A stretch of 64,000 nt of DNA from Rhodosorus marinus CCMP1338 (Eukaryota; Plantae; Rhodophyta): assembly GCA_029953675.1 (NCBI GenBank), contig JAMWBK010000001.1:3038001-3102000 (forward strand), read 5' to 3'. This document shows positions 5,889 through 64,000 of the stretch, in pieces (positions within the stretch are counted from its first letter, which is position 1; each line of letters opens with the position of its first letter). A program made the translations under genes and the position numbers. The notes beneath the pieces were generated by a model, which searched no databases, was not told the DNA's origin, and was given only the letters and a program-made list of their open reading frames with translations.

Positions 5889-7349
5889 GCTAATATGATT
5901 TAGTTCAAATAAGTTCGGAAACTGCGCACCTACGATTCGTGATAAATGGGATGGGGTGGACTGTATGATAATTTTTCTATTAATTATGCCGCTGGGATTT
6001 CTATATATACGGGGACTATGTTTCTTTTTAATACAATATACGGGTTTGATTGAATGAATGGTTTGATTGAGGTGGTCCGAGGTCGGTTTTTATCACTTGT
6101 TTTTGGGAGGCGAGCATTGGCAACTGTGCGAAGCAAGGTGGGAGGCTCCATGTGGGAGGTTCCATTGCGTACGGTGAGGATCCTTCAAGTATATAGCACT
6201 AAATCGGTTGGAGTACTCATGCAAACTCGTGCCTTCTATTCTTGTGCTGTTGTGGGCTATCGCTCCTCCAACCACGGGTAGCCCAGTTAATTATATAGTG
6301 AAGCCAACTCTCTGGATTTTTTGTTGTAGTGTGTATATTTTTCATCTTATTCCGGGGCGCACTTTCGTAGGTTGGTGATGTTCTCTCTGTAGCTCCGTCC
6401 TACGCTTTATTTAGAATGCGGATCCTGCTACAATCTCAAGAGGACGGGTGCTGTGAGCTTAAACACGACTCAGGAATATGTGCCGAGTTGTCCTTCCGCT
6501 CTGGAGCGGGCCGCTACTCATCATTTTATTTTCTTATCAGTCGCACTGTCTTTGTCCACTTTTGGGATGTTATCTATAGCAACAACGCAGTTGAGGATAT
6601 GCGGTTCCACTACGTACGGTTGGTGACAATAGCAAACACTGTATCACTTTCCCTGATTGCTTGATAGTTTTCCCATTACCGAATCTGCTGAACTATCTTG
6701 CTTAGCTTACTAGACACTAGATACTTGAGTTGGTTGGTTAAGCTTGAATAAAGGCTAGCTGCAACGGATAAAGAACTTGACACATTGCAGCGGAATCTAG
6801 TGAAAGTATTGAGTTTTGAAGGTTTAAGGAAAAGGGACTGGTTTTGATCCGGCGACACACCTCTAAGCTTCCAACCTGCTAAATACAGGACCATATTTCA
6901 CCAGTTATGAGCCTGGACTGCGCCAACAAGCGTATAGGGCTGCTAACCACGTCGACAAAGGATGGTCAGACAGATTTTTTTCTGAATGAGTGAGCAAGAT
7001 CGAGAGGTGCCCATACCTCCGCAAAAACGACCCGATACAGAGGATACCGCGACGGAACAGAGCATTCAGCCTTGAGCAGGGTCCAACAGGGACGGCCCCT
7101 CTGACGGAGGAAGAGCTAGCGACGAAGACGGAGGTTGTAAACTCGTTAAGATAATATGCAACCCCAATCCTGCAAAGATCTTAGCTTTGCACGGCGGGTT
7201 GGTTTGGCGATTAGACGAAGTTTCTAAGTAGAGTTGTTATTTACGTCGGACAAGTTTGTATCGAACCTCAAGTTATGTGATAACTGGAGCGTTTGACTTC
7301 TGGCTCGCGTCCGATACAAGTTTATCGGACTTGAATAAAACGAAAAACA

Positions 7350-27058: not shown

Positions 27059-27520
27059 CGAATGTCTCCTTAGAACGTTAGTTATCGTTGGTAAACGTTA
27101 GAAGCCCCATGAATGGAACGACTTTCTGTGCGCTAGTTGTCTATAGGCTCCGAGTTCCCGGGAGAGTCGAACCCCTTTACGGAGAGCGAGGTGCAAGACG
27201 GTTACCATCAGGGCATTTAGCACTTTTATTTCTACTTCCGCAATCGGGACACTGCAACCGAATATATACTTACTTAACGGCGGCAACGGACAGGGCTGGT
27301 TGAGCAGGAGCATTCCTCCTTTTCACTCGAAACAAAGTTGTGTTGGTTTCTGCTAAAATAAATTCTTCAACGGTTCATAACACTTTCGAAAAAGTACTAT
27401 GAACCGTTGAAGAATACTCGCAGCTCGTGATCGCCCTTTGCAAAATCGTCGAAGATTGCAACACCTCAACTTGACACGAGCAAACGGAACGTGACGATTA
27501 CGTTCATACCGAATAAAAAA

Positions 27521-27593
27521 TGGAGATGCCGGGCTTCGATCCCGGTACCTCGCGCATGCTAAGCGCGCACTCTACCAATTGAGCTACACCCCC
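27521..27593 (-). tRNA. tRNA-Ala(AGC)
   Basis: 73-nt cloverleaf GGGGGTGTAGCTCAATTGGTAGAG...CATCTCCA; anticodon AGC; G3:U70 Ala identity pair; followed by a T6 Pol III terminator (27515-27520). Confidence 0.97.
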
Positions 27594-27759
27594 ACGCATT
27601 GAGAACGTGAAAAATATACAGCTAATAATAAAAGTAGTTTTTGAGCGTTTTTCCAGTTCACAGGAAAATGTATTGTATCCACCCAGGAAAAGAAGGTGCC
27701 ATAGCGTCCAATAAACGTTTTTATCGATGCGGAAATAAAATAATATTCGTGTTGTCATG

Positions 27760-30414: not shown

Positions 30415-30488
30415 GCCGGCGTAGCTCAGTCGGCTAGAGCGCCAGGCTTTTAACCTGGTGGTCGAGGGTTCGAGCCCCTCCGCCGGCG
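30415..30488 (+). tRNA. tRNA-Lys(UUU)
   Basis: GCCGGCG/CGCCGGC acceptor stem, CCAGG-CT-TTT-AA-CCTGG anticodon arm, GGTTCGAGCCC T-arm, downstream T-tract. Confidence 0.97.
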
Positions 30489-60750: not shown

Positions 60751-61019
60751 ACAACGGAAGGTAGCACAGCACTGTGGATAGGACTGATGATGTTCAAGTA
60801 TTGCATTCCGTCAATGTCCTCACCGGGGGCCTAGTCGCTGAGAACGTCATCCCCTGCACCAGGATTGAAATGATCAATCCAAACGTAGCCGTCAAGGACG
60901 TCATTTCCCCTCTTCCACTCCCTCCTTCTTCACTCCCCCGCCGTTCAATCTGTCATCTCCTCCATTGGACAGATCGGTTTCATATCCACTATCACTGGTT
61001 TAGCTAGCTAGCTGAGCTA

Positions 61020-62220
61020 CTAGTCGTAAAGTAAATCATCACCACTACCGCCGTCTAATGAGTCGACACCGTCGTCTCCCGACAAGATGTCGTTGTCATC
61101 CCCACCATAAAGACGGTCATTACCCCTTTGGCCATAAAGACGGTCATCACCAGCAAAGCCAAAAATAACGTCATCCCCTGAACCGCCGAAGATACGGTCA
61201 TTACCGTCCCCACCGGAGATAATGTCATAACCCTCATCGCCGTAGATATAGTCATCTCCACCAAGACCAAAGATCTCGTCATTGCCAGCGTACCCGAAGA
61301 TTATGTCGTCTTGCTCCGTACCAAGGATCAATTCGCTGTCACTAGTTCCGCGGATAATGCATGCGCACGAGCCAGGGCTCTTTATAATCTGGTGAAACGA
61401 GAATTCCCAAGCGGTGAGTTATCGACCAACCCAGTCCCATTTCGAGCAAAGGATATCGGCAAACACTCACCGCCACCTCGGGGCACAACGATGCTTCAAA
61501 ATCGTCGAGCTCAAGGCACATCGCATCGGGGCCGTCGCCAACGGCGCATTCGTCCCCAACATCGCCGCAGCAGCGGCACGTACCATCATCTCCCGTAAGA
61601 GCCATGCAGGAATTATTCAGCCCAAACGCATTGCAGCTGCACACGACCGGAAGCTCACAAACCGGAACGTCGAGTCCATAAGCGACTCTGAGCTCGCATG
61701 TACCGTCCGGAGTGGTCTCTACCCTAAACTCTTCGCCATCTAGTCCCTTGACGATGGCGTGGCCAATCCAGAACAGAGAGGAGTTTTCACAACATCCCAT
61801 CTCGTCCGCCACCATCTCGTCCTGACAGATGACCAAGCTCAATCTGTTCAATAAAGTGCCCTCCGGCTGCCCCCTAGAGGCCACCACCTTCGCAGCATTC
61901 CTTCGGTTGCGGTATTTCACCGGTTCAGGGATGAGCTCCTTCTTCGTGAAGATCCCCCCCCTGATGCTCACTAACGAGAACGAGTCAACCACATCGAATT
62001 CCATACGCACGCATAGTGGTTCTTTGTTGGGTTGGACCCGAACCGTGACAGTGCCAACCGTTTCCCCGTTGAAAACGAGGTCTTTGCTTACTCCCTCTAT
62101 GCTCTCAAGAAGCTGACCGGTGGTCACGGAGGCATCAGCACATGTCCTGGCGTCATTGGCATCCACGGATACAGCACAGATAAACAGTACCGCAAAATAC
62201 CACACCACCACCGCCTTCAT
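61020..62220 (-). CDS. Secreted Cys-rich protein with 11 C-terminal RTX (hemolysin-type) Ca2+-binding nonapeptide repeats; exons 62220-61471 and 61388-61020 (372 aa)
   Basis: Signal peptide MKAVVVWYFAVLFICAVSVDA; 82-nt GTGAGT...TAACTCAC...CACCAG intron gives a phase-0 join ..CPEVA|IIKSPGSCAC..LILGTEQDD; GGxGxDxLx repeats run to the stop. Confidence 0.88.
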
Positions 62221-62956: not shown

Positions 62957-63369
62957 TTCAACACCTGGGTCCTGCTCGCAGCTTCCAAACAATCGTTTAC
63001 AAATTAACAACATTTTGGCTTTACGACATTTTGGCTTTACAACATTTTTCGAGCTACTATTGCATCGACATCATGTCCCCAGAGCCTGATACTCTGCCTC
63101 TGTGGTTGATTGGGCTACCGAACGTTGCCGCCATGACCTGTAGCTCACAACAGAAACAATCAGAGTTATCACTATCCCTCTGGTGCTCCGTCTGCTCTCC
63201 TGATCAACGCCCAATCCGAATCGCTATATTCGATTATCTGGTACGTGCGATCAGATTCTGATATGCTACCAGATTCCGAATATCCCGTAGCCTTTATTCG
63301 GCTGCTACCTACCGTACACTACTAAAACACTATGTACGCTCCATACCCAGACCCCTGTCCAGGGGTAGA

Positions 63370-63765
63370 CATGAGGAGTGGTTAAGTGTCCCTTGCAGGT
63401 AACGGACGACTCTTTTCGCCTGTTCGTAATCACCTACCCTGTAACTACTCATCTTTCTCGCCAACTGTCCTACGGCGTGGGCAATGCTCGAGCGGGTTCT
63501 CGTGCTAATGTAGAGCAGAGAACCCACGAGCGCCTGGTAAGGTAAATTCGTCATCAGGTTCGCTGTAACGGTCTCTGCGCGCTCTTGGGTCGCCAGTGTT
63601 TTGAACTTCCGGCATCCAGACATGGCATAGGAGTGAATTAGCTCCTGCAAGTGCCCGCTCTGGTTGAGGTAGACAAATTTTCTCGGCCTATCCCTCACTA
63701 TCTTGACGCCCAAGAATCGTCCTCGCCAAGGAACTTCATTTCATACAGTTCGTTGAGCACCCTCT
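63370..63765 (-). mobile_element. Ty1/copia reverse transcriptase C-terminal fragment
   Basis: YEMKFLGE../LGVKIVRD..YLNQSG; PYQALVGSLLYISTRTRSSIAHAVGQLAR; AKRVVRYLQGT. Confidence 0.88.
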
Positions 63766-63769
63766 TCGC

Positions 63770-64000
63770 ATCCGCTACGTCAGCCTTCCTACCGATCACC
63801 AGCCTCGTCAGGGAGTCGGCTTCACTTGCCAATGTCCGTCCAAATTGGAATGGCATCGTCGGCAATGTGTAGTCCAGTCTAGTCTCAGACGAGAAGCGGA
63901 ATAGAGCTACTTGCGTGTTCAGTTCTTGCGAGGGAAGATGTGCAATCTCCTCGAAGAGCTTGGCGTGGGTATTTTGGAGCTGACGTAAGGCTTCTTCCAC
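63770..64000 (-). mobile_element. Family C thumb-region fragment (runs off the window)
   Basis: ELNTQVALFRFSSETRLDYTL matches ELNTKLALFRFCSETRLDYTL at 49.5 kb. Confidence 0.85.

Follow-up and report, generated by a model that had tools for sequence, protein, structure and literature searches.

The window analysed here is a stretch of 64,000 nucleotides of Rhodosorus marinus CCMP1338 (positions 3,038,001 to 3,102,000, forward strand, of the 3.8-Mb contig JAMWBK010000001.1, assembly GCA_029953675.1). It is nuclear DNA of a unicellular marine red alga, and on its minus strand it carries the gene NDN08_005749, whose product combines a predicted endoplasmic reticulum (ER) signal peptide, a Rhodosorus-specific N-terminal domain (N-domain), a Cys-rich acidic spacer and a C-terminal block of RTX repeats. 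Sequence and structure prediction together support the reading of this tail as a genuine RTX beta-roll module such as bacteria have. The explanation that we favour as a whole, and regard as probable though far from certain, is that of an intact spliced gene in which an RTX block of bacterial origin was grafted into the terminal Cys-unit exon, and whose product would be exported through the ER to act in the extracellular matrix. The assembly is chromosome-level, and the genome of this strain comprises 31.2 Mb with 8392 genes and 24,821 introns in an annotation produced by BRAKER trained on RNA-seq (PMC10250338). The parts of the gene, in coordinates of the window, are the following.

61020..62220, minus strand: whole gene NDN08_005749, start codon to stop, two exons, from the open reading frames (ORFs) and the deposited model
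62220..61471, minus strand: exon 1, 750 nt and 250 codons, opening with the ATG at 62220
62158..62220, minus strand: predicted signal peptide, residues 1-21, MKAVVVWYFAVLFICAVSVDA, with a putative cleavage after VDA, from sequence reading and a helix at 3-19 in the AlphaFold2 (AF2) model
61633..62151, minus strand: Rhodosorus-specific N-domain, residues 24-196, from profile search and AF2
61471..61632, minus strand: part of the Cys-rich acidic spacer at the end of exon 1, residues 197-250, from sequence
61389..61470, minus strand: 82-nt phase-0 spliceosomal intron, GTGAGT..CCAG, with homologues at the same junction in two paralogous loci
61388..61020, minus strand: exon 2, 122 codons plus TAG
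61359..61388, minus strand: first 10 codons of exon 2, IIKSPGSCAC, remnant of a Cys-unit exon start by comparison with 17 Cys-unit exons
61023..61358, minus strand: RTX module, residues 261-372, predicted beta-roll, from Pfam, repeat register, AF2, matches in the PDB and the ratio of nonsynonymous to synonymous substitution rates (dN/dS)

The RTX module is made of 12 nonapeptides (residues 264-371, nt 61349..61026) that keep a 9-residue register without a break. The first of them is a degenerate leader, GTSDSELIL, and the other 11 follow the canonical GGxGxDxUx pattern, in which position 6 is Asp and position 8 is hydrophobic, so that the run of 11 GGxGxDx(L/I)x repeats up to the stop that had been reported in an earlier note on this DNA is recovered, preceded by the leader and followed by a single residue (D372). 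The module matches the Pfam family PF00353 (HemolysinCabind) with an E value of 3.9e-27 and 94 bits (cut-off 23), and its sequence matches to solved RTX beta-roll structures go down to E 2.7e-42; at the level of sequence, these matches far exceed chance. The structure prediction that the same note had called for gave short strands every 9 residues (pLDDT 75-92), and the Foldseek matches of the predicted roll are RTX beta-rolls, with a root-mean-square deviation of 2.2-2.5 A to alkaline protease and to the R1 module of AlgE6, in agreement with its proposal of a bacterial-type roll. The comparison of paralogs indicates that the tail is under purifying selection, the dN/dS values being 0.25-0.43 in the RTX part and 0.26-0.35 in the N-domain, with the caveats that dS in the repeats is near saturation and that the repeat register is possibly misaligned. 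The mature protein is markedly acidic (67 Asp+Glu vs 25 Lys+Arg), and this holds for the RTX part as well (29 vs 4). At the DNA level the 27-nt periodicity of the array is weak (72-76% matches in Tandem Repeats Finder, TRF) and the units are divergent, which rules out a recent internal amplification of the repeats. Base composition was also considered as a signal of transfer and discarded: the GC content at third codon positions falls from 0.64 (exon 1) to 0.50 (exon 2), but the Gly/Asp-biased codon content of the RTX part makes this difference nearly meaningless.

The proposal that the two ORFs join in frame through a canonical 82-nt intron coincides with the deposited annotation. The spliced product, with the exons joined in frame, has 372 residues and is identical (100%, full length) to the NCBI entry 'hypothetical protein NDN08_005749 [Rhodosorus marinus]', whose gene spans 1201 nt with one 82-nt intron, that is, the same model as read from the window. 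This intron fits the 19 other introns mapped in the family (70-182 nt, median 97, GTGAGT being the commonest donor), and a homologous intron, alignable as DNA, is found at the same place in two paralogous loci, NDN08_001934 (locus L001, intron 6890-6984) and NDN08_005352 (locus L002). Furthermore, a 2268-nt transcript from a transcriptome assembly of another R. marinus strain (L005) carries, after a 201-nt 5' untranslated region, one intronless ORF of 502 residues that holds the signal peptide, the N-domain, Cys-rich units and ~25 RTX units; the encoded protein clusters with an MMETSP0315 entry. In a second transcript, from a related strain (L004), the intron is also removed at the junction, so that the RTX part directly follows the rest, with a shift of 1 nt in the reading frame. 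This shift lies in a G-run around position 950, the called ORF (P0004, 287 residues) ends soon past the seam, and the cause could be either a faulty assembly or non-productive splicing.

We consider, therefore, that the two ORFs are one spliced nuclear gene, which is intact. If the intron were instead retained, the protein would stop at 61342 and the RTX ORF would be an untranslated fossil, a reading to which the out-of-frame junction of L004, with its ORF ending shortly past the seam, and the decayed RTX units just downstream of the gene lend some weight. However, the RTX frame is open over 122 codons with the Asp at position 6 intact in all 11 repeats, the dN/dS values given above are low, the intron resembles the others of the family and is shared by three loci, L005 carries the fusion in frame and the deposited model splices the intron, all of which makes retention very unlikely. 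A third exon reached by splicing over the stop was discarded in a manual reading, as no GT..AG pair gives a stop-free frame and the relic downstream has stops.

That the RTX-bearing sequence could come from bacterial contamination or from an assembly chimera has to be weighed too, because the great majority of RTX repeats are bacterial and Rhodobacterales live in algal cultures. Nevertheless, a spliceosomal intron precedes the RTX exon, which continues the frame of an alga-specific domain; the contig is 3.8 Mb long and the three paralogous loci are on two chromosome-scale contigs; transcriptome assemblies of other strains, which are independent, hold the same fusion; and eukaryotic dispersed repeats flank the gene. 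Contamination is excluded, and a chimeric origin is hardly conceivable.

The N-terminus of the protein reads as MK followed by 17 hydrophobic residues and V-D-A|N, which is predicted to be an ER-type signal peptide (residues 1-21). An N-terminal hydrophobic segment is present in all full-length members of the family, one of which is called 'Secreted protein' in UniRef, so the signal peptide proposed before from the sequence has its counterpart across the family. The N-domain that follows is a predicted beta-sandwich (AF2 on a 14-member alignment, pLDDT 86, pTM 0.80) with conserved Cys at positions 27, 70, 132, 143/144, 175, 188 and 194, and it conforms to the pattern that the 14-member alignment shows after the signal peptide, T-C...C.R..F...L..R.G.F...C...CC...A...R...C...VC...C. 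The profile of the domain matches exon 1 with an E value of 2.9e-82, and no further copies were found with it in the window. Among 1.84 billion representative proteins the profile gave 12 matches, all of them from R. marinus; according to this, two word-indexed searches of 5.8 billion clusters also returned R. marinus, with one match (P0132, from a Logan assembly) that lacks an organism assignment. The domain has no Pfam match at E up to 10, and Foldseek found no match to its fold in the PDB at E<1e-3, only generic immunoglobulin-like or ApaG-like beta-sandwiches (E >= 1.2e-3, TM <= 0.33). The 'GCC domain' of eukaryotic type that had been described for this region is thus a secreted Cys-rich domain of an alga, whereas its presentation as a general eukaryotic domain does not hold. 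The Cys-rich acidic spacer, taken as a whole, covers residues 197-260 and therefore continues into exon 2.

These results place the N-terminal part in an algal family of secreted Cys-rich proteins, as had been anticipated, with tails that are interchangeable among the members. The family has at least 14 members that differ in their tails: P0121 and P0122 have none, P0123, P0125 and P0130 have arrays of Cys-rich units, P0127 has another type of repeat, and NDN08_005749, P0002, P0005 and P0003/P0131 have RTX repeats. At least nine members have the N-domain without RTX. The RTX subfamily consists of NDN08_005749, NDN08_001934, the decayed copy NDN08_005352 and transcripts in other strains, and its RTX exons carry 11 to 25 nonapeptides, which run up to the stop codon.

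The exon layout of this family locates the junction between native and RTX sequence. In NDN08_002098 (P0125) all 14 introns are phase 0 and there is one Cys unit of ~36-47 residues per exon, and in NDN08_004880 (P0123) both introns are phase 0 and placed between Cys units. The 17 Cys-unit exons compared all begin 7-11 residues ahead of a CxC or CxCC motif. Exon 2 of NDN08_005749, after its phase-0 intron, has 7 residues and then CAC, and the RTX exons of the subfamily start in a similar manner (IIKSPGSCAC in NDN08_005749, AEVRNGSCTC in P0002, VTRKGLCAC in P0131) before passing to IIRGT... and the RTX repeats; in NDN08_001934, moreover, an ordinary Cys-unit exon of 35 residues with phase-0 introns on both sides lies directly ahead of the RTX exon. 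As the RTX exon starts like a Cys-unit exon, the seam between native and RTX sequence is inside exon 2, about 10 codons from its start (near 61359/61358), and not at the intron. On this comparison of exons, the junction intron is an ancestral inter-unit intron of the family and not the seam of the fusion, and the RTX block replaced the body of the terminal Cys-unit exon rather than being shuffled in as a self-contained exon. Exon shuffling through the 82-nt intron, which the earlier note had proposed, has to be abandoned, this intron being of the ordinary inter-repeat phase-0 type. The layout of one unit per exon with all introns in phase 0 makes the family prone to remodelling of its tails.

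A separate observation concerns NDN08_002098 itself (locus L006, 1501-5311), where a block of three whole exons and part of a fourth occurs twice with hardly any difference (residues 484-619 and 650-785), the introns of both copies having the same lengths (89, 122 and 96 nt) and the protein ending at 785. This repeat points to a very recent tandem duplication.

Regarding the origin of the RTX block, exon 2 shows 47-57% identity over 100-130 residues to many bacterial and metagenomic proteins annotated as 'calcium-binding' or 'RTX toxin-like', and these share with it the typical lead-in xIxGTxxxDxLxG. With its own paralog the identity is 53%, compared with 57% over 105 residues with a Grimontia protein. 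Among the named relatives, the best belong to Gemmobacter and Yoonia (both Rhodobacterales), Fulvimarina and Grimontia, with cyanobacteria lower in the list. An attempt to identify the donor did not single out any lineage, the named best matches being scattered over Rhodobacterales, Hyphomicrobiales, Vibrionaceae and cyanobacteria. Given that the host family is found in one species and that most of its members are devoid of RTX, a late acquisition from a bacterium by horizontal transfer is the most economical interpretation of these comparisons.

Two other origins were weighed. The Gly/Asp nonapeptide array could have arisen in the alga, either by motif expansion (convergence) or by ancient eukaryotic or plastid-derived inheritance; the unit has only 9 residues, a copy number from 12 to ~25 in the family shows expansion and contraction, no donor can be named, and the RTX-bearing matches include cyanobacteria, from which the plastid derives. 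However, the similarity to bacterial proteins extends through the lead-in, the units are old and divergent in DNA with a weak 27-nt periodicity, which argues against a recent blow-up from one unit, and the confinement of the host domain to one species in mostly RTX-free members speaks for late acquisition, so that we regard an origin within the alga as unlikely. The other possibility is that the whole gene, N-domain and RTX together, came from a bacterium as a unit and gained its introns later, in line with the many bacterial RTX proteins in which a functional domain at the N-terminus precedes an RTX block at the C-terminus. This would require bacterial relatives of the N-domain, which has no bacterial or other non-Rhodosorus relative in the 1.84 billion representatives or the 5.8 billion clusters, and it is difficult to reconcile with the at least nine members that have the N-domain and no RTX and with a seam placed inside a Cys-unit exon of the family type; its probability is minimal.

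The C-terminal end of the protein is also unusual for an RTX protein. Type I secretion is directed by an uncleaved C-terminal signal of ~60 residues placed after the RTX repeats, which are unfolded at low Ca2+ and fold upon Ca2+ binding (PMC3034196), and for the best-studied RTX domain, that of the Bordetella adenylate cyclase toxin, a C-terminal cap structure is described as critical to folding (PMC9120197). In each of the 119 bacterial and metagenomic matches, 42 residues or more (median 194) come after the stretch that matches best, whereas NDN08_005749 has one residue after the repeats and its paralogs end at most 7 residues past the last repeat. NDN08_005749 thus has no C-terminal extension that could hold a type I secretion signal, in accordance with the absence of such a signal noted previously. 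Two features lie at this end of the gene.

61001..61023, no strand: (TAGC)n microsatellite, 5.8 copies, which holds the stop codon and closes all frames, from TRF
60762..61007, minus strand: decayed RTX-like units past the stop, in two frames and interrupted by stops, with 80% DNA identity to the L002 region

The microsatellite may have cut off the RTX array. The decayed units (for example ..NGGDDRLNGG.., ..GNDVLDG.. and ..GAGDDVLSD..) suggest that the ancestral RTX tail was longer, the evidence for this relic being weak, as tblastn gave an E value of about 1e-4 and the space searched was small. The relic was also considered as a vestige of the bacterial post-repeat or secretion-signal region and this was rejected: the bacterial post-repeat motif G.D.I.DF..G.D.IDL is present in 8/119 bacterial matches and in 0 shuffles, and the profile made from those eight proteins scores at noise on the relic (E >= 35). 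A scan of the relic with NCBIfam gave nothing.

Around the gene, dispersed repeat families with 75-96% identity recur in the window and around the loci of NDN08_001934 and NDN08_005352. The latter and the window align collinearly along 8 kb or more (L002 5664-12710 vs window 62075-53420), which suggests a segmental duplication. NDN08_005352 itself (L002 4400-6710, on the same contig about 1.6 Mb from the window, annotated with 206 residues) is a full-length copy in the course of degeneration: a dispersed-repeat insertion of ~1.1 kb interrupts its exon 1, conserved Cys residues have changed to Phe, and its annotated intron donor is 4 nt off the homologous GTGAGT. Other features of the window are listed below.

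49.6-52.3, 56.1-56.6, 58.2-59.9, 62.78-62.96, 5.1-5.8 and 8.3-8.8 kb: dispersed repeats
27520-27594, minus strand: tRNA-Ala(AGC), by ARAGORN and Rfam
30415-30488, plus strand: tRNA-Lys(TTT), by ARAGORN and Rfam
63333-64000, minus strand: ORF fragments that resemble a retrotransposon polyprotein by eye (..LLYISTRTR..AHAVGQLARKM..), with no Pfam match at E <= 0.01

How such a protein could have been assembled and what it could do may be outlined as follows. The ground plan of the family is a signal peptide, a disulfide-rich beta-sandwich of ~170 residues and a variable tail, mostly arrays of Cys units of ~40 residues. An RTX block from a bacterium would have taken the place of the body of the last Cys-unit exon, with the leader and the CxC retained, and the C-terminal extension of the kind that bears the bacterial secretion signal would have been lost, probably because export now proceeds by the ER signal peptide. 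The chain would enter the Ca2+-rich lumen of the ER with its N-terminus first, the reverse of type I secretion, and the beta-roll would load Ca2+ and fold in the secretory pathway or in seawater, where Ca2+ is about 10 mM, with the adjacent disulfide knot acting as folding nucleus instead of a C-terminal cap. Ca2+ binding and Ca2+-dependent folding of this tail are predictions from its sequence. Outside the cell, the rigid acidic beta-roll could be a Ca2+-dependent structural or adhesive element of the mucilaginous cell covering, and it may bridge to anionic mucilage polysaccharides in the way of the alginate-binding R-modules of AlgE. As the mature protein is acidic, Cys-rich, presumably secreted and a member of a lineage-expanded family, we think that a Ca2+-dependent structural or adhesive role in the cell covering is its most likely, if hypothetical, function. 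The complete chain of events, that is, a captured bacterial RTX roll exported through Sec61 with the N-terminus first, folding without signal or cap from a disulfide-knot nucleus and serving as an element of the red-algal cell covering, is put forward only tentatively, and we would sooner expect one of its links to fail than all of them to hold.

Several points weigh against the explanation preferred here. The splice at NDN08_005749 in CCMP1338 rests on the RNA-seq-trained deposited model and on relatives. No donor lineage emerges, similarity ranks being unreliable for RTX repeats because these are short and constrained, and an older eukaryotic or plastid-derived origin of the repeats may be an alternative. 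Without a C-terminal cap, the roll may attain its fold only weakly, or need to be anchored to do so. Finally, dispersed repeats surround the gene, decayed RTX units follow its stop and one of its paralogs is clearly degenerating, so this copy could itself be heading for loss although its ORF is intact.

RTX beta-rolls have been studied, to our knowledge, almost only as bacterial type I secretion substrates, and the disorder of the repeats at low Ca2+, their vectorial folding from C to N and the C-terminal cap have all been accounted for by this way of export. An RTX tail that is selected and expressed in a eukaryote, with an ER signal peptide and no C-terminal extension, is therefore a natural experiment on what a beta-roll needs in order to fold, and it would be of interest to engineers of beta-roll switches. 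For genome evolution, it is a well-resolved case of domestication of foreign coding DNA, by a graft into the last exon and not by a free exon; for red-algal biology, the protein is a candidate for a Ca2+-dependent constituent of the extracellular matrix in the unicellular forms, a matrix of which little is known. As to whether such an architecture had already been described, the protein is indeed deposited, as hypothetical, but the architecture was not found in the searchable literature, where we found no paper holding both Rhodosorus and RTX terms and nothing on a eukaryotic RTX architecture.

The closest known systems include the bacterial RTX proteins (serralysin-type proteases, family I.3 lipases, RTX cytolysins, S-layer proteins and adhesins), with which NDN08_005749 shares the C-terminal tandem GGxGxDxUx repeats and the predicted parallel beta-roll. 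It differs from them in being a eukaryotic nuclear gene with a spliceosomal intron, in having an N-terminal ER signal peptide in the place of the uncleaved C-terminal signal and no C-terminal cap, in that no ATP-binding cassette transporter, membrane fusion protein or outer membrane protein partners are expected, and in a presumed folding order from N to C. RTX proteins in the strict sense have a C-terminal signal of ~60 residues and no N-terminal signal peptide, and their genes belong to Gram-negative bacteria and are usually linked to those of the three transport partners (PMC3034196); NDN08_005749 falls outside this definition. The R-modules of the mannuronan C5-epimerase AlgE of Azotobacter vinelandii (PDB 2ml1-2ml3) are likewise RTX rolls that serve as accessory modules of a secreted protein in a matrix of anionic polysaccharide; the predicted roll superimposes on AlgE6 R1 with 2.4 A over 88 columns, and the sequence match has an E value of 5e-07. 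In contrast to AlgE, NDN08_005749 has no catalytic partner domain, the organism and the export route are different, and the binding of polysaccharide is hypothetical. The volvocine pherophorins, modular secreted glycoproteins of the green-algal extracellular matrix, resemble the Rhodosorus family in their expansion within one lineage and in combining a globular domain with variable repetitive tails, and a member of the Rhodosorus family (P0128) is labelled 'Pherophorin domain-containing protein' in UniRef. This label was not reproduced, as 0/14 members, P0128 among them, match PF12499 at E up to 1 or 10, and no Pfam model other than PF00353 matched in the 14 members at E up to 1-10. As, in addition, NDN08_005749 has no hydroxyproline-rich rod and no green-algal protein appeared in the N-domain profile search, we take the pherophorins as an analogy only. 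Another close system is the rest of the Rhodosorus family (NDN08_002098, NDN08_004880, NDN08_002777 and others), with which NDN08_005749 has in common the signal peptide, the N-domain, the Cys-rich units and the phase-0 inter-unit introns; the tails of the other members are arrays of Cys units or other repeats, and the RTX block is the distinctive mark of the NDN08_005749 subfamily, the only one in which it is found.

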